Of a DNA stretch of 64,000 nt, positions 34,833-63,509 are shown one piece after another. This stretch comes from Macrostomum hystrix (Eukaryota > Animalia > Platyhelminthes), in the NCBI GenBank assembly GCA_950097015.1, contig CATNEN010000033.1:1-64000 (forward strand), read 5' to 3'. Each line of letters starts with the position of its first letter. Within the stretch, counting starts at the first letter, position 1. Under the pieces are notes generated by a model. That model was not told where the DNA came from. It saw only the letters and a program-made list of their open reading frames with translations, and made no database searches. The translations under genes were made by a program, and so were the position numbers.

Positions 34833-36395
34833 ATGCTCTACGTTCCCTCCTACATGAGCCCGAGCGGGGGCGGTCTGGGCAACATGGGCCACTCGCGCGA
34901 GGACCTCAGCATGTCTGGCGGAGGAGGCGCCGGATCCGACAATCGGCAGCAGAGCCAGCGGCGCAGCCGGAAGCAGAGGAAGCCGAGCGGCGGTCTGGGG
35001 CGGAGCAAGCTGGTGCGATTCGAATCGCGGACCTCGCACCTGCGCCTCTACCGCCAGAGGCGGCAGCAGCAGAAGCTGCAGGCAGACGATGACAACGACG
35101 ACGAGGAGGAGTCCGCGGTCAGGATAATTTCCGAAGAAGACGATGGCGACGATGACGAGACTCAGAACTCTCGGGACGACTCGCGCTTCCAGTCGAATTC
35201 CGCTGCGTCCACCCGGCACCTGGCGTCGGTTGACACGCCAGCATCGGCAGTCTTTCACGACTGTCACATGCTGGGCTGCGAGAGGGTCCGCTTGAACGTC
35301 TCCGGCATGCACTTTGAGACTCGACTTGGCGTACTCAACCAGCACCCGCGAACTCTGCTCGGCAATCCGCAGAAGAGGGCGCGCTACTTCGACAGGCGAA
35401 GCCACGAGTACTTCTTCGATCGGCACCGGCCGACCTTCGAGGCCGTGTTCAACTACTACCAGTACGGCGGCAAGCTCAAGCGACCGCCAACCGTCACCGA
35501 CGACATCTTCCTGACCGAGCTGGAGTTCTACGAGATCGAACGAGAAGTGATCGACGCCTACAAGAAGGACGAGGGCTACATCTCCGAGACTGTGGTGCTG
35601 CCGGAGCACCCGTTCAAGCGGGCCGTGTGGATGCTGTTTGAGTACCCGGAGACTAGCGCCCCCGCCTTTCTGATTGCCATCGTCTCGGTGGTGTTCACCA
35701 TCCTGTCGATCATTCTGTTCTGTGCGGAAACTCTCAGCGAATTCAGAGGCACCCACTGCGTGCCATCCGGCCTGCCAAACTTCCTGGACCCGTTCTTTGT
35801 GGCCGAGTCTGCGTGCACCGCCTGGTTCACCATCGAACTTGTCGTTCGCTTCTTTGTCTGTCCCTGTAAGAAGGCCTTCATGAAGGACATCAAGAACGCG
35901 GTGGATCTATCAGCTATTGTACCTTATTATGTGACGCTAACTAATGTTCTCGTCACAATGAGCTGCGAGGGCGCAAGATCTAGTGCGTCCTTGGCCTTCC
36001 TCCGAGTGGTTCGCCTCATCCGCGTGTTCAAGCTGACCAAGCACTCGGCCGACCTGCAGGTTCTTGTGCTCACCTTCCGCGCCAGCATCGAGGGCCTGGG
36101 CCTGTTCCTCGTGGCCCTGATCGTCTGCATCCTGCTGTTCTCGTCCACCATCTACTATGTCGAGAGCGAGGTGCGCGGCTCGCAGATTGAAAGCATTCCG
36201 GATGCGTTCTGGTGGGCGGTGATCACCATGTGCACCGTCGGCTACGGTGACAAGGTGCCCAAGGGCCCGCTGGGCAAGATTGTCGGCTCCGTCTGCGCTG
36301 TGGCCGGCGTCCTGACCCTGGCCATTCCGGTGCCCATCATCACCGAGAACTTCAACAAGTTCTACACGCACAAGACTGGCCGCGGCAGGCACTGA
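34833..36395 (+). CDS. Shaker/Kv1-like voltage-gated potassium channel subunit, intronless CDS
   Basis: T1 domain (ERVRLNVSGMHFET...YFFDRHRPTFEAVFNYYQYGGKL), S1-S6 helices, S4 LRVVRLIRVFKLTKHS, pore FWWAVITMCTVGYGD, S6 LAIPVPII. Confidence 0.95.
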   Translation: MLYVPSYMSPSGGGLGNMGHSREDLSMSGGGGAGSDNRQQSQRRSRKQRKPSGGLGRSKLVRFESRTSHLRLYRQRRQQQKLQADDDNDDEEESAVRIISEEDDGDDDETQNSRDDSRFQSNSAASTRHLASVDTPASAVFHDCHMLGCERVRLNVSGMHFETRLGVLNQHPRTLLGNPQKRARYFDRRSHEYFFDRHRPTFEAVFNYYQYGGKLKRPPTVTDDIFLTELEFYEIEREVIDAYKKDEGYISETVVLPEHPFKRAVWMLFEYPETSAPAFLIAIVSVVFTILSIILFCAETLSEFRGTHCVPSGLPNFLDPFFVAESACTAWFTIELVVRFFVCPCKKAFMKDIKNAVDLSAIVPYYVTLTNVLVTMSCEGARSSASLAFLRVVRLIRVFKLTKHSADLQVLVLTFRASIEGLGLFLVALIVCILLFSSTIYYVESEVRGSQIESIPDAFWWAVITMCTVGYGDKVPKGPLGKIVGSVCAVAGVLTLAIPVPIITENFNKFYTHKTGRGRH

Positions 36396-39689: not shown

Positions 39690-42060
39690 TGAGATGGGAT
39701 ATTAGGTGAGATGGGATATTAGGTGAGATGGGATATTAGGTGAGATGGTATATTAGGTGAGATGGTATATTAGGTAAGATGGGATATTAAGTGAGATGGG
39801 ATAATAAGTGAGATGGGATATTAGGTGAGATGGGATATTAAGTAAGATGGGATATTAGGTGAGATGGTATATTAGGTGAGATGGTATATTAGGTGAGATG
39901 GGATATTAAGTGAGATGGGATAATAAGTGAGATGGGATATTAGGTGAGATGGGATATTAGGTGAGATGGGATATTAGGTGAGATGGGATATTAAGTGAGA
40001 TGGGATAATAAGTGAGATGGGATATTAGGTGAGATGGGATAATAAGTGAGATGGGATATTAGGTGAGATGGGATATTAGGTAAGATGGGATATTAGGTGA
40101 GATGGGATATTAGGTGAGATGGGATATTAGGTGAGATGGTATATTCGGTGAGATGGGATATTAAGTGAGATGGGATAATAAGTGAGATGGGATATTAGGT
40201 GAGATGGGATATTAGGTGAGATGGGATATTAGGTGAGATGGGATATTAAGTGAGATGGGATAATAAGTGAGATGGGATATTAGGTGAGATGGGATAATAA
40301 GTGAGATGGGATATTAGGTGAGATGGGATATTAGGTAAGATGGGATATTAGGTGAGATGGGATATTAGGTGAGATGGGATATTAGGTGAGATGGTATATT
40401 AGGTGAGATGGGATATTAAGTGAGATGGGATAATAAGTGAGATGGGATATTAGGTGAGATGGGATATTAAGTAAGATGGGATATTAGGTGAGATGGTATA
40501 TTAGGTGAGATGGTATATTAGGTGAGATGGGATATTAAGTGAGATGGGATAATAAGTGAGATGGGATATTAGGTGAGATGGGATATTAGGTGAGATGGGA
40601 TATTAGGTGAGATGGTATATTAGGTGAGATGGGATATTAAGTGAGATGGGATATTAGGTGAGATGGGATATTAAGTGAGATGGAATATTAAGTGAGATGG
40701 GATATTAGGTGAGATGGGATATTAAATGAGATGGGGTATTAAGTGAGTTGGGATATTAAGTGAGATGGGATATTAGGTGAGATGGGATATTAAGTGAATT
40801 GGGATATTAGGTGAGATGGGATATTAAGTGAATTGGGATATTAAGTGAGATGGGATATTAGGTGAGATGGGATATTAAGTGAATTGGGATATTAAGTGAG
40901 TTGGGATATTGGGTGAGATGGGACATTAGGTGAGATGGGACATTAGGTGGGGTGAGATTTTGGGTGAGATGGGATATTAAGTGAATTGGGATATTAGGTG
41001 AGATGGGATATTAAGTGAGTTGGGATATTAGGTGAGATGGGACATTAGGTGAGATGGTATATTAGGTGAGATGGTATATTAGGTGAGATGGGATATTAAG
41101 TGAGATGGGATAATAAGTGAGATGGGATATTAGGTGAGATGGGATATTAAGTAAGATGGGATATTAGGTGAGATGGTATATTAGGTGAGATGGTATATTA
41201 GGTGAGATGGGATATTAAGTGAGATGGGATAATAAGTGAGATGGGATATTAGGTGAGATGGGATATTAGGTGAGATGGGATATTAGGTGAGATGGTATAT
41301 TAGGTGAGATGGGATATTAAGTGAGATGGGATATTAGGTGAGATGGGATATTAAGTGAGATGGAATATTAAGTGAGATGGGATATTAGGTGAGATGGGAT
41401 ATTAAGTGAATTGGGATATTAAGTGAGTTGGGATATTAGGTGAGATGGGACATTAGGTGAGATGGGATATTAAGTGAGATGGGATAATAAGTGAGATGGG
41501 TTATTAGGTGAGATGGGATATTAGGTGAGATGGGATATTAGGTGAGATGGTATATTAGGTGAGATGGGATATTAAGTGAGATGGGATATTAGGTGAGATG
41601 GGATATTAAGTGAGATAGAATATTAAGTGAGATGGGATATTAGGTGAGATGGGATATTAAGTGAGATGGGATATTAGGTGAGATGGGATATTAAGTGAAT
41701 TGGGATATTAGGTGAGATGGGATATTAAGTGAATTGGGATATTAAGTGAGATGGGATATTAGGTGAGATGGGATATTAAGTGAATTGGGATATTAAGTGA
41801 GTTGGGATATTAGGTGAGATGGGACATTAGGTGAGATGGGACATTAGGTGGGGTGAGATTTTGGGTGAGATGGGATATTAAGTGAATTGGGATATTAGGT
41901 GAGATGGGATATTAAGTGAGTTGGGATATTAGGTGAGATGGGACATTAGGTGAGATGGGACATTAGGTGGGGTGAGATTTTGGGTGAGATGGGATATTAA
42001 GTGAGTTGGGATATTAGGTGAGATGGGATATTAAGTGAGATGTGATTTTGGGTAAGATTG
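39690..42060. repeat. 17-bp minisatellite (ggatattaggtgagatg)
   Basis: About 2.4-kb array with recurring variant blocks. Confidence 0.98.
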
Positions 42061-42489
42061 GATTGTGAGATGTGGCAGTAGTTAAGATAGTAGAGAAATA
42101 TTTAACTGACATTCGTAGATAACAACATAGATAGATAGCAGAAGTTGTGGAAGTATTATATGCAAAACAATCGAGTCAAGTACTCGTGCATTTGTCAATG
42201 GTGTGATGAAAGCTATCAACTATTGTGCATGGTATCTGCAGGTTTTCAACTGATCTAGGAATAAAAGATTTGCGCAAAACTCCTCACAAAGGGATCAATT
42301 GAATTACCGTTTAGTTAGACCGCTGGTGCTCAGCACCTGAATAATGTATGAGCACAGTCTCAGCGAGTGGACTCAAGACTGAGACGACAGGTCAGAGCCA
42401 TCTGCTACGCCTGTATCCGCAACTGGACTTTCAGAGATACATTATGCAGTAGTGGGGGCTAGTGAGGGATCTTGTCTGCTCTGCTGTTC

Positions 42490-42490
42490 G

Positions 42491-42542
<52 letters not shown>

Positions 42543-42608
42543 ATCTGTCTGTCTGCCTGTCTGTCTGTCTGCCTGTCTGTCTATCTGTCTGTCTGTCTGT
42601 CTATCTGC

Positions 42609-42642
<34 letters not shown>

Positions 42643-42665
42643 GTCTGTCTGTCTGTCTATCTGCC

Positions 42666-42728
<63 letters not shown>

Positions 42729-42787
42729 CTGTCTGTCTGTCTGTCCGTCTGTCTGTCCGTCTGTCCGTCTGTCTGTCTGTCTGTCTA
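42490..42787. repeat. (TCTA)n/(TCTG)n microsatellite
   Basis: Visible directly. Confidence 0.98.
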
Positions 42788-43186
42788 TAATATTTATTCA
42801 ACAGTCCCAGTTCAATTGACATCGGGAAGAATGTGAAAATAGATCCTCTCGGTTTTGAAATGTTTCGAATTTGAAAAGCTCATTCAAAGAAACGGAAGCA
42901 ACTGATTGATAATTTACGAGTAAAACCCGCGATTTCCACTCGTGAATTGAAAATCAATTCGGTCGAAGCGCTGATTGAATTGCGCGAGACTCTTACAGTT
43001 CATATTTAATTGAAATTGCATTCATATAGATTTCAGAAATTAATTAATTAGAATTCAGAATCAGAATTACCAGAATTAATTCCCCCTCCCTGTCTATCTA
43101 TCTAGATAGACAGATAGATTGTCCCTCTTTCTCACCCTCCCTCTCTCTCTCCCTCTCTCCCTCTCTCTCCCTCTCTAGGCTAGGCT

Positions 43187-43241
43187 AGGCTAGACTCTAC
43201 TGATGAGCTCCAATAAGAGCGAAATGCGTCTGGAGTTGCCT
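43187..43241 (+). ncRNA. Minimal type I hammerhead ribozyme, copy 1
   Basis: Core CTGATGA at 43200-43206; stem II GCTC/GAGC with loop CAATAA; GAAA; short stem III (AT-GC-GT); cleavage triplet GTC ending 43230. Stem I is ACTCTA/TGGAGT, extended by AGGC/GCCT. Confidence 0.88.
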
Positions 43242-43522
43242 TGGTTCGAATCTGGATTTCAATTTTTTCGATACATATCGGAATTGATTCCAACATTAGA
43301 TTTTAGAAATTCAATGGGCAGTGTCCTCTCTCCTCTCTCCCGCTCTCTCTCTCCCTATCTCCCTCTCTCTCAGGCCAGCACCGGCGTCTCGTACGACCGA
43401 GTCAGTGCCACGGAGTTGAGTGAGTGTGGATTGAGTTGCGGGGCGCTGCCGAATCGATTACGATATGTTGAGATTGAAAGCTGGATTTGAACAAGCGCCT
43501 ATAGCCTAATGGCTAAAGCGCT

Positions 43523-43577
43523 AGGCTAGACTCTACTGATGAGCTCCAAAAAGAGCGAAATGCGTCTGGAGTTGCCT
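43523..43577 (+). ncRNA. Minimal type I hammerhead ribozyme, copy 2
   Basis: Same architecture: CTGATGA at 43536-43542, stem II loop CAAAAA, GAAATGCGTC ending 43566. It lies exactly 336 nt downstream of copy 1. Confidence 0.88.
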
Positions 43578-44564
43578 TGGTTCGAATCCGGATTTCAATT
43601 TTTTCGATACATATCGGAATTGATTCCAACATTAGATTTTTGAAATTCAATGGGCAGTGTCCTCTCTCCTCTCTCCCACTCTCTCTCCCTCTCTCCCTCC
43701 CTCTCTCACACTTTCTCTCTCCCCCTCTCTCCCTCTCTTTCCCACTCTCCTTAGTGCCCGGAATCGAAGCTGTTCTTTTCTCTCCCTCACTCCCTCTACC
43801 CCGTCTCTCTTACTCTCTCTCTCTCACCTCTCCCTCTCTCTCAAGCCACCTAAGCGTTGTATGACTTTATTTTATTCTACAATACTTGCCCTCAATGCAT
43901 AGTTCTAGCCGGCTTATTTCGCAGCAATAAACTCGGTCTCAGTATATTTGACAACACTACTGAGGCAGCCAATAACTAAGCTGTACTGCTTGTTGCCATG
44001 CAAGCTTTCATAAACTGCTCAAGCGTCCATGCTCCGTCTCTCTTTCACTCACTCCCATGGGCTCCATGAGCTGTGAGAGCTTTGCTCAGGGGAGGGCCAA
44101 ATCCCGCAATATTCTGGTAGCAACTGCGGGCCCGAGAACTTCGGCTCCGTCGCCTGCAAGGAGGGCCTGTCAGGCGACTGCTCCGGAATTATATGCGCTA
44201 CAAATCCCCTGTGTTTAGCTGGCGACCTTTCCCCCTTCCCCTACCCCGAGCCCCACGGGTTAAATAGAACCCAGTGGGACTCTGACCTACCGTATCTTCC
44301 TTCTCCTTTCCTTCTTGTGTCTGCTTTCTGCTCCTGGGCATCAGTATGTTGCTGCTTCTCTTGACAGAGCAACAAGGCAGAAATTTTTATAGTTATTATA
44401 ATTACTGATGCGCAAAATATGTTAATTTGTCCGCTTAAATTCCACTAAGATTACAAAGTGCACATCGTTATAAATTAATGGTACAGCATAATTTGGAGAG
44501 ACACTCTTCAGACTGCCTTCTGACATACTCGAACTTCGATGGCTGCCAATCACAGCCAAATTTG

Positions 44565-45630: not shown

Positions 45631-48600
45631 ATGGCCAGTCAGATGCTGCTGCTGCTGCTGCTGCTGCTGCTGTCTATGGTCCAACTGCCTGGTCGCAGTT
45701 ACGCCTGCTATGATTCAGTTCGTCTCTACCCGGTTGCCAACGAACAGGCGTGGATCCGGGTTCGACTGCAGCTGCCGCCTGCCTGCAGCCTGGCCAACGT
45801 GGGCACCTCGATGGCTCCCGTGCTGAGCATCCAGCAGGTGAATTCTTCACAAGCTGTGCACCGATCGGTTGTGCAGACACTGAGGCAACTGCCGGGCAGC
45901 GATCGACTGGACCTACTGCACACTTTCAGAGGCCTGCGACCCGGTAGAGCCTACTTTGTGTGCTTGAGTAAGCACCAGCTGGTGTTAAAGTCCAACATGA
46001 CGGTCTACACCAAGCAGCAGGAGTGTTCGCCAGCGAGTACACAGGAGGCGCCCGGACCCACAAGGTGGGACAGCATCCTCGGTGTCTGCCTGTCCATGCT
46101 GTACATCTTGACCTTGGTGAGAACTGGTCCTTGTACACCCGATCTTTCCATCCACTGGAGATTAGAGAGCGTGACACACACACCCTCAATTACTCCATTT
46201 ATACCAGTACAAACTTTTGGAGTCGAGTAGGGAATCGAACCCCCGACCTTCTTAAGTTGTGAGACCGGCGTTCAAGCCCCTAGACTACATTATAATGCGC
46301 GAATAACAGATTCAACACTTCAAAAGAGCTAGTATACATTAGAAAAAAAAATTCAAATTTGATTTTGTACTTTATAATATAATCTCATCGAGAAATCGAA
46401 AATATACAAGCCATATTCACACCATGCTACAGGGCCAAGCCCCCCTGAAACTCAATCCGCATCGATGAGTTTGCTCAATCCAAAATGAAAGCGATCAAAT
46501 TTCTTCTATCGTAAAAATGCATTTTTCCATTATCACAGTCATCTTTTATGCTAGCAATAGCTTATTCAAACTTTTTTGCGCTCTGCATGAAAATAATTTA
46601 CTACACACCCTGAGCAGCTCAGCACTGGAATCCCACACCCTGAGCAGCTCTAGTCTGGAATCCCACACTCTGACCACCTCAGCACTGGAATCCCACACTC
46701 TGACCACCTCAGCACTGGAATCCCACACCCTGACCACCTCAGCACTGGAATCCCACACCCTGACCACCTTAGCACTGGAATCCCACACCCTGACCACCTC
46801 AGCACTGGAATCCCACACCCTGACCACCTCAGCACTGGAATCCCACACTCTGACCACCTCAGCACTGGAATCCCACACTGTGACCACCTCAGCACTGGAA
46901 TCCCACACTCTGACCACCTCAGCACTGGAATCCCACACCCTGACCACCTCAGCACTGGAATCCCACACCCTGACCACCTCAGCACTGGAATCCCACACTC
47001 TGACCACCTCAGCACTGGAATCCCACACTCTGAGCAGCTCTAGTCTGGAATCCCACACTCTGACCACCTCAGCACTGGAATCCCACACCCTGACCACCTC
47101 AGCACTGGAATCCCACACCCTGACCACCTCAGCACTGGAATCCCACACCCTGACCACCTCAGCACTGGAATCCCACACTCTGACCTCATCGGCACTGGAA
47201 TCCCACACTCTGACCACCTCAGCACTGGAATCCCACACCCTGACCACCTCAGCACTGGAATCCCACACCCTGACCACCTCAGCAGTGGAATCCCACACTC
47301 TGACCACCTCAGCACTGGAATCCCACACCCTGACCACCTCAGCACTGGAATCCCACACCCTGACCACCTCGGCACTGGAATCCCACACTCTGACCACCTC
47401 AGCACTGGAATCCAACACTCTGACCACCTCAGCACTGGAATCCCACACCCTGACCACAACAGCACTGCAATCCCACACGCTGACCACCTCAGCACTGGAA
47501 TCCCACACGCTGACCACCTCAGCACTGGAATCCCACACCCTGACCACCTCAGCACTGGAATCCCACACCCTGACCACCTCAGCACTGGAATCCCACACCC
47601 TGACCACCTCAGCACTGGAATCCCACACCCTGACCACCTCAGCACTGGAATCCCACACCCTGACCACATCGGCACTGGAATCCCACACTCTGACCACCTC
47701 AGCACTGGAATCCCACACTCTGACCACCTCAGCAGTGGAATCCCACACCCTGACCACCTCAGCACTGGAATCCCACACCCTGACCACCTCAGCACTGGAA
47801 TCCCACACCCTGACCACCTCAGCACTGGAATCCCACACCCTGACCACCTCGGCACTGGAATCCCACACTCTGACCACCTCAGCACTGGAATCCAACACTC
47901 TGACCACCTCAGCACTGGAATCCCACACCCTGACCACAACAGCACTGCAATCCCACACGCTGACCACCTCAGCACTGGAATCCCACACCCTGACCACCTC
48001 AGCACTGGAATCCCACACTCTGACCTCATCGGCACTGGAATCCCACACTCTGACCACCTCAGCACTGGAATCCCACACCCTGACCACCTCAGCACTGGAA
48101 TCCCACACCCTGACCACATCGGCACTGGAATCCCACACTCTGACCACCTCAGCACTGGAATCCCACACTCTGACCACCTCAGCAGTGGAATCCCACACCC
48201 TGACCACCTCAGCACTGGAATCCCACACCCTGACCACCTCAGCACTGGAATCCCACACCCTGACCACCTCAGCACTGGAATCCCACACCCTGACCACCTC
48301 GGCACTGGAATCCCACACTCTGACCACCTCAGCACTGGAATCCAACACTCTGACCACCTCAGCACTGGAATCCCACACCCTGACCACAACAGCACTGCAA
48401 TCCCACACGCTGACCACCTCAGCACTGGAATCCCACACCCTGACCACCTCAGCACTGGAATCCCACACTCTGACCACCTCAGCACTGGAATCCCACACCC
48501 TGACCACCTCAGCACTGGAATCCCACACCCTGACCACCTCAGCACTGGAATCCCACACCCTGACCACCTCAGCACTGGAATCCCACACCCTGACCACCTC

Positions 48601-49069
48601 GGCACTGGAATCCCACACTCTGACCACCTCAGCACTGGAATCCCACACTCTGAACACCTCAGCACTGGAATCCCACACCCTGAGCAGCACTACTCTGGAA
48701 TCCCACACCCTGACCACCTCAGCACTGGAATCCCACACCCTGACCACCTCGGCACTGGAATCCCACACTCTGACCACCTCAGCACTGGAATCCCACACTC
48801 TGAACACCTCAGCACTGGAATCCCACACCCTGAGCAGCACTACTCTGGAATCCCACATCCTCACGCCACCACAGCCTACCGCTCTTCCCTAATCCCACCG
48901 CCAGCTGCTTCTGGCTGTCATTTGTTGGCGCTTTCGCACCTGCCTGGGCCAGTGGAGCGGCGAGGTGGCCTGCGACCCGGAGACTGGCTCGGCCGCCAAA
49001 AAGGCGGAGGCAGCGGCTGCCGCAGAACCGGTGGTGGCCACGAGAGTGATGCGATCCACGCTGATCTGA
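45631..49069 (+). CDS. Small type I membrane protein: signal peptide, FN3-like domain, TM helix, short tail (2 exons)
   Basis: Exon 1 is 45631-46116 (caaaATGG, donor gtgaga, phase 0); exon 2 is 48905-49069 (acceptor ccag). Splicing completes a TM helix, ILGVCLSMLYILTL|LLLAVICWRFR. FN3-like motif LRPGRAYFVC; C-terminus STLI. Confidence 0.75.
46219..46289 (-). mobile_element. tRNA-like head of SINE family A, truncated copy
   Basis: The reverse complement tgtagtctagggg...ctcacaacttaagaaggtcgggggttcgattccctactcgac matches the head at 60363. Confidence 0.65.
46603..48860. repeat. 27-bp minisatellite (tgaccacctcagcactggaatcccacac) inside the intron of the FN3-TM gene
   Basis: About 2.25-kb array; unit length is divisible by 3, giving long stop-free frames. 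Confidence 0.98.
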
Positions 49070-58865: not shown

Positions 58866-60626
58866 ATGGAGAACGATGCATTTAAACCATTCCCACTGCC
58901 GGATGCATCCGCTGCCGATCATGCCACGCTAGAAGACGTTCTCAGCGACGAAAACCTACCTATGGAGAGTGCACCACGGATTCCCCAGCGACCTCCGCAG
59001 ATGCAGCAGTCGCGACATGCTAAGCCGAGCGAGAAGTCTCTGTCGAGTAATTCGAACATTATCGATAAGCAGAAGCGTCTGCTCGGCGTCGGTGACACGA
59101 AAAAGTCGGCAGCTGCCAGCGTCGCTGTGAAGCAGCGCATGCTGTTCAGGCAGCCCGGGTCAGGACGTATTCAAGACATCAATTACTCGAGGCAATCGAA
59201 TTGTGACGACAGCTCGAAGAAGAGTAAGCTACAGTCCCAAGAGTTCGTCTTCAGCAAGTCTATGGATATGTAAGCTTTTGGATTGCTGTGGAAGGGTGAT
59301 GTAACATCGCAATAAATGATAATAAAATAGGGATGACCGAAAGCCCGTTTGAATTTAAAATTTCAGGCAACAATGTATTGTGGTTATCTATCTCCATCTT
59401 CCCGATTATCTATCTATCTCTATCTTCCCGAAAATTCACTTCGACGAAAATAAAATGTCTGTATCAATTCACGACCGGGATGGCTTGAATAAACATGTCA
59501 GAATAAGCTTCCAAAACTGTTAGCCAATACTTAGGCGTAAGTCGTAAGATGAGCCCTATGTTAATTGAGCAACGTGTAATGAAAAAGAAATTCAATACAA
59601 ACAAACAATTGCACTTCCATCGCTTTCTCTGAGTGAGAAATTCATGTCATCCAAGAATTTTTACCTAGGTCTTCTGTCCTTTCTTATCCGACAACACTAA
59701 GTGACTGTTTGACGTTTTGGTTTTTGGCGAAGTGGAATTTTGAGCGAGTGAAGCGCCCACTGAATGCCTTTAAAACTTAATCATTGTCTCCATCAGCTCG
59801 GCAAACAACCCGGATGACGCCGGATTCGACGAGATAAAACTGTCTCCATTCTACGATGGCTACGACACGCGAAACTTGCTGGAAAAATGGCATGACCTTC
59901 CAAATAGGCTAACCCTAAACGACTGGGCCTTCTATATACGCACCACTCGGCGCAGGTCTAATCGCAGTCAGGTTGATCGTCTAGTTGGTGACGTCTGCGC
60001 CAAGGTGCTGAGCATGCGCGAGTTGTTGCAATACTCGCTGGATAGCGGGGCGCACTGCCTGATGTGGTTGAATTCGAGTCTGGCCAGGCGATTTCTACCG
60101 CGAATGCGTAGCGGCGCACATATTATGGGCCGCGTGCAGTGCGACGTTGTTGTCAAGGACAAGCAGAGTCTGTCCAGCCTGCTGTCGGAGTACAAATTTA
60201 CCGAATTGGCGGATTGGCCAATGCACGTGTGCCTCAACGAGAATCGCCAAGAGATTAAGAGGAATATTCAGCGATTGTGCCGGCATCAATATATTGTGAG
60301 TGGACCATTTTTCTATTTCTCAGTTAATGGGGCAGAGGTTTTGAGCAGACAAAGGCTACAGTGAGGTTGTAGCCTTGTGGTTAGAGGGTCGGACTCACGA
60401 CTTAAAGGTCGGGGTTCGATTCCCGACTCGACCGGAACGATTTGTGTTCTTTAGCAAGACACTTAACTTTGCATTGCTTCAGTTCACCCAGCTGTTAAAT
60501 GGGTTACCAGCATTAGCTGGGGTGATTGAGGGGGTGTGGCCTCTCCCCAGTCCATGGACTGAACAGTTGTACCCAGCGGCTGTGCTGTCGGCTGCACATC
60601 TGGCCCAATGGAGGCAGGTGTAATCA

Positions 60627-60664
<38 letters not shown>

Positions 60665-63509
60665 TATTATTATTATTATTAATTATCACTATTATTGTTA
60701 TTATTATTATTTTTCGTTATCTTTATCGATGTAACTTCCGTTCACCGAATTTACTTTTAATGTTGAGCTTGTCAATTTTTTCATTATCGCTAAACTTCCA
60801 AAGCTAATCGCTTGTTTTGAGCCGCTGTAATAGAACAAATGTAAGTAAGTTTCTAAGGGGGGTCGGTGGCAGAGCGGTTAACGCGTTTGCCTCTCGCACC
60901 AATGTCCCCGAGCTCGATTCCGCGGTGAGGCCACGTCATCACCAAATGAACCAAATGTGGTTCATTTGGGGCGCAGCCGCGGAGAGAAGGCTTGGGCGGA
61001 CCAAGGATCAGCAGGGGCTTGTCGTGCGACTTACGCGCGTGAGGGCCATCGTCCAAGGCACTGTGAAATGTACCTGAAGATGAGACTCAGGGCAGATGTA
61101 CACACCTGTGTGAGCGAGTGCCTCTCAGGAGTCAGCGAAATGCGAAATTGCCTCCTTGCTGGCTGGGGGTCTAGTGTCACCAAATGGATGTGCCATTGCC
61201 TGCAGCCTTCCTGCAGTTATTATTGTTTTTATTATAAGCTAGTTTCTAGATAAATCTGAGTAGACATAATCAGCTATCTTGTGTCTGTCATCCGCAAATA
61301 GACAGTTATGGAATAGTGCCTAATACGCACACACCAACGGCATTGCAGGGCCACTACATGGCCAAGTGTTTGGATAAAGACGCGCAGAATTGTCCCAATA
61401 GCGAGAACAACTTTTGCGAGTGCTTCCGCAAGCACTACTTCGTGCCTGAGTACTTTGCGTTCAGCCACTTCTATGTAATGGAGGAATTTCTAAAGAAATA
61501 TGAAAGTGAGTTGGTCTAGTTCCAAATGTCTAATTGGTCTAGTACAATAGGTTTAACAGAATAGGAAATGCGATTTGTTATGAAAAATCTCCATAAAAGT
61601 GTTCGAGGCGATGTGTACCGAGGTGTACGGTAACCCTGACTATACCATTTGAAATTGTGCAATATAGCTCGTACTCTGTCGGTGTGGTTAGTATCTGCTT
61701 TGTTTTGGTGTTGATTTCGCTAGCTACAAGTAATCAATGAACATCGATCCACTCGCTCCCTGCCTGTTCAGCGGACATCGACTTCATGAAGACAGTCTGG
61801 TTAGCCAAGCCCGCCTATCTTACTGGCGGCAAAGGCTTCTTCCTCATCCGCGACGCGAAGGAATTTCGCTACTTCTACCTGGTCAGGTCTGACTCCTGTG
61901 TCCGGCGCGAGGGATTCACTCTTCAACGCTACCTGTCTCGACCGTGCACACTGAACAATATGAAGGTTGACTGCCGCATGTACCTATTGATTACCGTGCT
62001 GAATGGGCACCGAGTCTGCGGCTTCTTCCATCCGGGATTCGCTCGCACTGCGTCCGCCGCCTGGAATTTCGACAAATCGACCGGCAACGTATTTGAGCAC
62101 ATCACAGCCACCGAGCTCTACAAGCTGAGCAACAAGAAAATTCCAGGCCAGAACGATGACGACGATGACGATGAGAAGGCTCAGTGCTTCAACTTCAACG
62201 AAGCCTGCGAAATGATTGCCACCGGGGGCAAGAAAGCAAAAAAAGGAGAAGCGGAGAGTGTGCCGCCATTCGCTGCGGAGGACTCCGATGGTGACAAATT
62301 TCTTGAGAGAGACTTTCAAAAATTTCACTGGCGCTTAAAGTACATGATTGAAGTGCTGTGCGCCAAGATGGACCCTATTGTGCGAGACAAGCCAGGCACC
62401 TTCCAGATCTTTGGGCTCGACATACTAATCGATTCCGACACCAAGGTAAATAAAGGGTAAAAATAGAATAATCAGAGTACTACTCTCAATAATTCTTCAC
62501 CTACAAATTGCAGCCCTGGCTACTTGAGGTCAACTCTCATGTGGCCACTGAGCAAATCTATGATCGAACTCAGTGTCAGGTTATCTCAAATGTTGTCACT
62601 GAAGCCATCTGCATCGTAGTTGAATTGTTTCAGAAGGCTATCGAGGTAACTTCACTATTTTATAATGGTGTTTGAGCAAGCTATCGAAATCATACTTTTT
62701 TGTTCGATTAGGTCCTAGTAGAAACAAATTTGCAGATCGATTTTGAATCAGAATAAACAGAAGTTTCAGTCAAATTTAGTTTTATGTCACTCAAAGATCA
62801 ACCGCTCCACTTGTCACGCCACAGGAGGAGGCCATCGCCCTTGAGATTGAGCAGCGAGAGGCTCCACTAGCCAAGCTGTCGCGGTCCCAGCGCTTCATGA
62901 CAGCCAAGGATCAGCAGGAAGCCATCGATAATCTCTCCGCTTTGTTAGATATGACGGAAATCTCCAAGCGAAAGCCGCCAATCTTCATGCAGAACTTCTT
63001 CTGGTGGTACGACACGCCACGCTATCGCTGGATCAAGCCGTGGGTGATTCGCAAACCCAGGCCAGTCCAGGAAATCCCGTGGTATTCGCAGACTTTCCTC
63101 ACCTTGGTCAAACGAAACGACGCCATGATGCGATGCAACATCAAAGCCGATGAAGTCACCGCGAATCACGACAAAATGGACTATTTCAGACATGTTTTCT
63201 GGCGGGTGAGCGATTAGCAAATTCTACCAATAAGCCATTAGGCCCGTGCAAATACGATTATGACAACTTCTAGCAACTAGCGTGTTACATGATTTATGAC
63301 ATTCAAATAGCATATCGAACGCCCGATTTTCAAATCCGCAGGATAATATGGAGTCGCAGATAAATGCTTTCGAAAACAAGATTCAGAAGCAGGGAGAAAA
63401 ATTTCAGCAGCGGAAAGAAAGAATTCAGCAGCCAGCCAGCAGTGGCACCAGTGTCAGCGAATCTCCAGCAGGCCATGTCTTCGAATCTAGCAACATTTCG
63501 CCCAAATGA
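58866..63509 (+). CDS. Tubulin-tyrosine-ligase-like protein, closest in layout to TTLL10 (glycylase), 7 exons
   Basis: Exons 58866-59269, 59797-60295, 61274-61505, 61772-62445, 62514-62645, 62825-63205 and 63342-63509 are phase-consistent. Motifs: WLAKP..GGKGFFL, LQRYLSRP, KVDCRMY, GFAR, FQIFGLDILID..PWLLEVN. The subfamily call comes from remembered TTLL10 spacing. Confidence 0.85.
60363..60715 (+). mobile_element. tRNA-derived SINE family A, copy 2, with (TTA)n tail, in TTLL intron 2
   Basis: A box tagccttgtgg, B box ggttcgattcc, body shared with 4362-4660, followed by a long (att)n tail. Confidence 0.85.
60857..61235 (+). mobile_element. tRNA-derived SINE family B, copy 2, in TTLL intron 2
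   Basis: Near-colinear with 30530-30893, with small insertions. Confidence 0.85.

Follow-up and report, generated by a model that had tools for sequence, protein, structure and literature searches.

A small family of hammerhead-bearing, retrozyme-like elements in CT-rich arrays of the Macrostomum hystrix genome

A pair of minimal hammerhead ribozymes in Macrostomum hystrix marks a locus that is probably a single copy of a retroelement, young and non-autonomous and of the retrozyme or Sm-alpha type, with the life cycle proposed below. The DNA analyzed was a stretch of 64 kb (the window), and the 220-Mb genome (42 contigs) was searched for further copies. The ribozyme family found there is a further member of the kind already known as metazoan retrozymes and schistosome Sm-alpha elements. 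The features of the locus and of its surroundings are collected in Table 1. Unit positions refer to the window's own 336-nt unit, in which 43231 is position 1 and 43566 is position 336.

Table 1. Positions of the ribozyme element, its parts and neighbouring features in the window
Feature	Position	Strand	Remarks
ORF with DDE_3 (Tc1/mariner-type) transposase domain, 186 aa	33659-34219	-	Directly upstream of the Kv gene
Shaker-type Kv channel ORF, 520 aa, uninterrupted	34833-36395	+	BTB_2 and Ion_trans domains
Potassium-channel RNA editing signal	36237-36350		55.2 bits; inside the Kv ORF; the window's only Rfam match at gathering level
17-bp minisatellite	40000-42063		121 copies
(TGTC)n array	42473-42786		
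Upstream CT-rich target microsatellite	43122-43183	+	Short AGGCT slippage at the 5' junction, 43177-43186
Entire insertion, 522 nt (1.56 units)	43184-43705	+	BLAST of the tripled unit against all loci
Hammerhead 1, minimal type I	43187-43241	+	Cut predicted after 43230; upstream A box absent
Cut-to-cut unit, 336 nt, rod fold	43231-43566	+	Predicted double-cleavage product
First-unit B-box-like GGTTCGAATCT and T6 run	43243-43268	+	GGTTCGAATCT at 43243-43253; T6 run at 43263-43268
Internal CT-rich tract, unit 94-142	43324-43372	+	End site of every family copy
Purine/GT-rich arm	43373-43495	+	Complementary to unit 1-141
tRNA-type A box TAGCCTAATGG	43502-43512	+	A-to-B-box pattern match
Hammerhead 2, minimal type I	43523-43577	+	Between A and B boxes; cut predicted after 43566
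Third, partial unit (unit 1-141)	43567-43705	+	CT tail at its end
B box GGTTCGAATCC and T6 run	43579-43604	+	GGTTCGAATCC at 43579-43589; T6 run at 43599-43604
Downstream CT-rich microsatellite	43706-43850	+	Target, or target plus tail expansion
30-bp repeat array	46517-48892		Reads as a 791-aa ORF of 10-residue repeats
tRNA-derived SINE copy	~60355-60700	+	(ATT)n tail

The window was searched with a hammerhead core pattern allowing up to two mismatches, which resulted in exactly two sites and in none in 100 shuffled sequences. Both sites contain the conserved core of CUGAUGA (43200-43206 in hammerhead 1), GAAA (43221-43224) and the NUH triplet GUC, with cleavage predicted 3' of the C. In hammerhead 1, AGGC, UAG, ACUCUA and CUGAUGA are followed by a GCUC/GAGC stem II with a CAAUAA loop and then by GAAA, UGCG, UC, the predicted cut, UGGAGU, U and GCCU; hammerhead 2 has the same layout, shifted 336 nt downstream. 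Helix I is the open helix (type I) and is composed of 6 bp, an internal loop (UAG versus U) and a 4-bp AGGC/GCCU extension, while helix II is composed of 4 bp and a 6-nt loop; both helices are present in the MFE folds. The two motifs lie within a direct repeat of 189 nt whose copies are 336 nt apart and 95% identical. Outside the CT-rich end, these copies differ at three positions, and within the ribozyme they differ in loop II only (T versus A), as the sequence-only reading of this DNA had pointed out. The Infernal check against Rfam that it proposed resulted in matches of both sites to the HH9 model with scores of 36.0 and 36.6 bits (E = 2e-7 and 1e-7 in a 651-nt E-value search). A search at Rfam gathering thresholds gave no match at the ribozyme sites, the gathering score of HH9 being 52. 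In the HH9 alignment every core position is present and the helix III of the model is deleted, and the scores fall below the cut-off because this helix is missing. A helix III closing the core is absent within one copy, where only an A-U and a C-G pair around a 2-nt loop would be possible. The AUGCGU of the window ribozymes is self-complementary when two G-U pairs are included. The earlier description of two complete minimal hammerheads 336 nt apart, with a nearly absent stem III and a self-complementary ATGCGT, is thereby confirmed by the sequence, the shuffles and the HH9 match.

The same reading called the ribozymes tandem, but they are not part of an array of repeats: the two belong to one insertion, which in unit positions runs from 290 to 336, then from 1 to 336, and then from 1 to 141. 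The window copy has two ribozymes because it ran for 1.56 units. The proposed cut-to-cut monomer stands at its coordinates and at its length of 336 nt. This unit has a GC content of 48.5% and is non-coding, with spurious ORFs only and with no LTR, PBS or PPT. Both window ribozymes have a C-to-T change (GAAAU for GAAAC) that is unique to them among the 72 exact ribozyme matches in the genome, and they also have two further derived variants in common; they are therefore sisters that come from one template or insertion event. At one position, the last, the B box of the first unit departs from the family form, with T in place of C.

The region around the ribozyme element is dense in satellites (Table 1). 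The element lies 6.8 kb downstream of the Kv channel ORF and on the same strand, and the DDE_3 ORF on the other side of that gene is probably a transposon remnant.

When the 189-nt repeat was used as a BLAST query against the genome, 163 candidates were obtained, and the 40 that were scored are 94-97% identical. The exact ribozyme pattern matched 72 genome sites and a 21-nt pattern from the 3' part of the element matched 126, with no match for either control (the reversed pattern in the case of the ribozyme). Across 40 scored copies, identity is 97-100% over the 123 nt that precede the tRNA-like head. The ribozyme family is thus dispersed, with roughly 100-130 copies that are 94-100% alike, and by its low copy number and high identity it is, as judged from these sequences, young and small. 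The proposal of a dispersed retrozyme-like family is supported by these counts, which give at least 72-126 copies genome-wide, the 72 exact matches all keeping the core. About 25 of 29 copies found via the upstream region, independently of the ribozyme, have an intact core; because divergence is low, however, intact cores, conservation and covariation are uninformative on selection for the ribozyme. Most copies span 0.4-1.4 units and hold one ribozyme. Two ribozymes, 300-336 nt apart, are present at about six loci in the genome, and arrays of more than two were not found among the genome loci, the longest copy being 1.64 units. At one locus (L092, G000:C38:21522530-21529498), five single-ribozyme copies are spaced 1589, 690, 1589 and 680 nt apart, and a 226-nt copy appears to have been amplified there within a larger, higher-order tandem repeat. 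Loose patterns of a ribozyme followed by a B box resulted in 76 genome matches, 75 of which belong to the ribozyme family, and no other family with this layout was identified. Two metagenome scans gave no relatives. Eight loose-pattern matches from metagenomes were rejected as relatives, being bacterial-type tRNA T-arms beside a chance CUGAUGA. A metagenome contig (Ga0265297_10015416, L107 3842-3911, minus strand) contains an unrelated hammerhead-like motif, a chance match, with CUGAUGA, helix II, GAAA, a long helix III and GUC, and with a T-loop-like GGTTCGAATCC in the helix III hairpin.

The end points of 88 distinct fetched copies were mapped by placing the copies on the window unit. The 3' ends of all 88 fall at unit 131-142, in the CT-rich tract, and 44 of them are at unit 141. 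The 5' ends are spread and reach up to 1.64 units back: about 45 are found within the 90 nt preceding the cut site, about 5 between unit 104 and 246, 26 in the CT tract at unit 94-98 (exactly one turn), and 18 further out, within unit 1-93. One unit is exceeded by 25 of the 88 copies, 7 of which (482-551 nt, the window copy among them) have two ribozymes. The junction between positions 336 and 1 is crossed by all copies that extend back beyond unit 1, and none of the 88 mapped copies ends at unit 336 or in the T6 run (unit 33-38). The templates were therefore uncut or religated, and not terminated by Pol III; given that copies cross the junction and span as many as 1.64 units, their template was an RNA that was either multimeric or religated (circular). 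Unit 1, where the cleavage product is predicted to begin, is the exact start of four or five copies, against a local density of about 0.5 ends per position (Poisson P of about 0.002, the site having been chosen in advance); this excess is suggestive, and consistent with a 5' end produced by self-cleavage.

The sequences flanking the copies were examined for their composition. If a 60-nt flank of at least 80% C+T is counted as CT-rich, both flanks are CT-rich in 53 of 89 copies, one in 32 and neither in 4. The identical micro- or minisatellite is often found on both sides of a copy and differs by locus, examples being (CTCA)n, 12-mers and 24-mers, which means that the CT-rich arrays existed before the element entered them and are not its product. 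Around the window copy, CT-rich DNA is found at 43122-43176 and at 43706-43850. The cleanest insertion of the family is L025 (G000:C38, ~31509127-31509602), which starts exactly at the predicted cleavage site and has a target-site duplication of about 80 bp in non-satellite DNA, starting directly after a short CT tract. At a further locus (L065, G000:C2, ~7353328-7353469), a 142-nt copy begins at unit 1 and has its first six bases repeated in front of it, and some 80 nt of unrelated sequence separate the copy from the duplicated CT-rich minisatellite target; this extra sequence may have been captured, or added without a template, at the 5' junction. Together, the constant 3' end, the 5' ends truncated at various points, the target duplication and the microhomology shared by tail and target are the signature of target-primed reverse transcription.

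The RNA of the 336-nt unit folds into a long rod with a linear MFE of -127.5 kcal/mol (z of -5.8); as a circle, it has an MFE of -123.0 kcal/mol (z of -5.6) with 71% of its bases paired. In the rod the two unit ends are held close by helix I and helix II is formed, and the L025 copy folds likewise. Dimer energies were obtained from an explicit double-hammerhead structure. With the family-type helix III (ACGCGU/ACGCGU), the double hammerhead gains -8.1 kcal/mol over two monomers, whereas the AUGCGU variant of the window gains only -4.5 kcal/mol. An unconstrained RNAcofold run gave a domain-swapped dimer without helix III. In these energy models, a palindromic helix III favours the double hammerhead and is weakened in the two window copies. 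The double-hammerhead mechanism is established for the hammerheads of newt and ASBVd (PMC6155905). In newt, a helix I extension with an internal loop can permit cleavage of the monomer (PMC6155905), so solitary copies of the present family need not be inert.

From these patterns we infer a course for the transcription, cleavage in vivo, circularisation and reverse transcription of the family. The unit holds its minimal type I hammerhead inside a tRNA-like frame that has decayed, and its remainder pairs with itself into the rod. A transcript longer than one unit would be cut at its GUC sites, mainly by a double hammerhead, for which two copies would form the 6-bp palindromic helix III between them. 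The unit-length or multimeric RNA, possibly circularised by tRNA ligase, would then be copied by a reverse transcriptase supplied in trans, the cDNA being primed on nicked CT/AG microsatellite DNA annealed to the internal CT tract of the element. The enzyme would run back over the ribozyme junction and halt at variable points. If transcribed from outside, the window copy would release the 336-nt RNA of 43231-43566. Among the sequencing runs listed as containing the element, none is recorded as RNA, and contigs from four runs aligned to it only as four short pieces, with no joints or ends. Candidates for the enzyme were sought with Pfam models. A search of the genome for GIY-YIG resulted in two weak matches only, in frames of about 310 aa, and a search for RVT_1, a profile that cannot separate Penelope-like elements (PLEs) from LINEs, resulted in 1,998 candidates, of which the best 150 were scored and most have long uninterrupted frames. 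Since there are many intact reverse transcriptase ORFs of other kinds, a LINE, in particular one with a CT-type tail, could be the driver of the ribozyme family.

Such a LINE is also part of another reading, which we consider unlikely, in which the element is an ordinary tRNA-derived SINE that is transcribed by Pol III from its A and B boxes and copied by a LINE with a CT-type microsatellite 3' tail; no circle would be formed, and the hammerhead would be a passenger or a 5'-processing device. The A box, ribozyme, B box and T6 run do stand in tRNA-gene order and both boxes fit the consensus, the A-box-to-B-box pattern having one match in the window and none in shuffles. The genome also contains a very abundant tRNA-derived SINE that lacks a hammerhead and ends in an (ATT)n tail; its head pattern has at least 1,360 exact matches, and one copy is located in the window (Table 1). 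At 17 of 19 positions, the head of this SINE agrees with the A-box region of the ribozyme element. LINE-driven copying classically leaves a fixed 3' end and truncated 5' ends, intact reverse transcriptase ORFs of 950-1300 aa are numerous in the genome, and Sm-alpha itself has been termed SINE-like (PMC2770079, PMC8490949). The tRNA-like frame is, however, decayed. Its T stem and acceptor stem are gone, ARAGORN called no tRNA at default settings and only implausible ones when relaxed, with the ribozyme kept or removed, and the Rfam tRNA model gave no match at E values up to 10. A Pol III transcript ending at the T6 run would be about 100-115 nt long; all copies run past this run, which is internal to every one of them, and such a transcript was therefore not their template. 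Nor do 5' ends pile up where Pol III would be expected to start, about 6 of them falling in unit 266-276 at a density equal to that of the neighbouring positions. Copies as Pol III start-to-tail products were rejected, since their 5' ends are scattered, with many located well upstream of the A box. Some 123-150 conserved nt upstream of the A box, and the copies that exceed one unit or have two ribozymes, also speak against an ordinary SINE. We read the tRNA-like frame as a probable relic of a tRNA-SINE ancestor.

Two further alternatives appear very improbable to us. In one, the ribozyme pair is a pseudo-LTR remnant of an autonomous PLE whose coding part was deleted. It draws on PLEs having minimal hammerheads in partial tandem repeats and preferring microsatellites (PMC8557442, PMC4209133). 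All 88 mapped copies are nevertheless 69-551 nt long and made of the 336-nt non-coding unit, with none joined to an ORF, and patterns from the tail and the mid-region gave no genome matches beyond the ribozyme family. In the other, a repeat that merely resembles a hammerhead was duplicated locally in DNA, the motif being inert and without RNA function. The weakened helix III of the window copies would fit an inert motif; against it, every core position is intact in 72 copies, the sequence has helices I and II as well as the palindromic helix III, the z of the rod fold is about -5.8, and dispersed insertions with target duplication need an RNA intermediate. The non-autonomous retroelement proposed above may also be carried further than we have done, in a version that appears distinctly unlikely to us, by which the placement of the ribozyme is functional. 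The hammerhead would cut exactly at the anticodon-arm position of the tRNA-like module and present to the tRNA ligase RtcB a 2',3'-cyclic phosphate and a 5'-OH, held by helix I like the exon halves of a spliced pre-tRNA; the CT tract of the resulting circle would be the annealing site for nicked CT/AG microsatellite DNA, and microsatellite-primed reverse transcription would follow. If true, this would explain the fixed 3' end, the class of exactly one turn and the copies of up to 1.64 units.

Some of the small circular RNAs of invertebrates are known to come from retroelements with ribozymes, and the copying of such elements back into DNA has so far been a matter of inference. The family described here is small, young and mappable, and its 88 copies form an unusually legible insertion record, with a fixed start in the CT tract, passage over the junction, stops after one turn or near the ribozyme, CT-rich targets and an 80-bp duplication. 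It is therefore a convenient family for testing the circle as a template and for asking which reverse transcriptase copies it. For genome annotation, the element accounts for a class of CT-flanked repeats.

Among known hammerheads, Rfam RF02275 (Hammerhead_HH9) has an identical core, and the helix and loop II of hammerhead 2 (GCUC-CAAAAA-GAGC) equal the model consensus; in contrast to the ribozymes described here, HH9 has a hairpin helix III, and the score of 36 bits lies below the cut-off of 52. In amniotes, HH9 is a conserved intronic ribozyme present as a single copy. Newt satellite 2 and ASBVd share with the present family a helix III that is too short within one copy and is extended when two copies share it, as well as a helix I with an internal loop and an extension (PMC6155905), but they come from other hosts, their unit sequences are unrelated, and the newt repeats are located in large arrays. 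The pseudo-LTR hammerheads of PLEs and the non-autonomous derivatives of PLEs are alike in having a partial copy before a full copy, a microsatellite bias, minimal hammerheads and extra junction sequence, as seen here in L065 (PMC8557442, PMC4209133), and in a long target duplication (PMC8557442), as at L025. The targets reported for them (PMC8557442, PMC4209133) are (TA)n, (CA)n and (C)n, whereas here they are CT-rich tracts.

The same kind of element has been described as metazoan non-LTR retrozymes (Cervera and de la Pena 2020, PMC7229834), the carriers of which include platyhelminths (PMC7229834). These have in common with the present family a type I hammerhead, a non-coding unit (170-400 nt in theirs, 336 nt here), a highly self-paired unit RNA of moderate GC content, target duplications of more than 4 bp and a presumed mobilisation in trans by a non-LTR or Penelope-like reverse transcriptase (PMC7229834). 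Unlike the family described here, which has at most 1.64 units and mostly one ribozyme per copy, they are found in tandem, from dimers to 62-mers (PMC7229834). The present family further differs in having its ribozyme between tRNA-type boxes, in its strict 3' anchor in a CT tract and in its insertion in CT microsatellites.

By description, the family most resembles the SINE-like Sm-alpha element. Sm-alpha and Sj-alpha of Schistosoma share flatworm-type hosts, a type I hammerhead and an occurrence both dispersed and in tandem, and the Sm-alpha unit is 335 bp long versus 336 bp here, a likeness that is likewise by description (PMC2770079, PMC8490949). Sm-alpha also has a tRNA-related head, its copies being called tRNA-Gln pseudogenes by tRNAscan. 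It differs in its copy number of more than 10,000 to 38,000 (about 100 to 130 in the present family), and the schistosome ribozyme is fast as a monomer, whereas the ribozyme described here is without a hairpin helix III. The family is thus set apart from Sm-alpha and the retrozymes by its low copy number, its maximum of two ribozymes per locus, its CT-anchored 3' end and CT-rich targets, and a helix III predicted to form only in the dimer.
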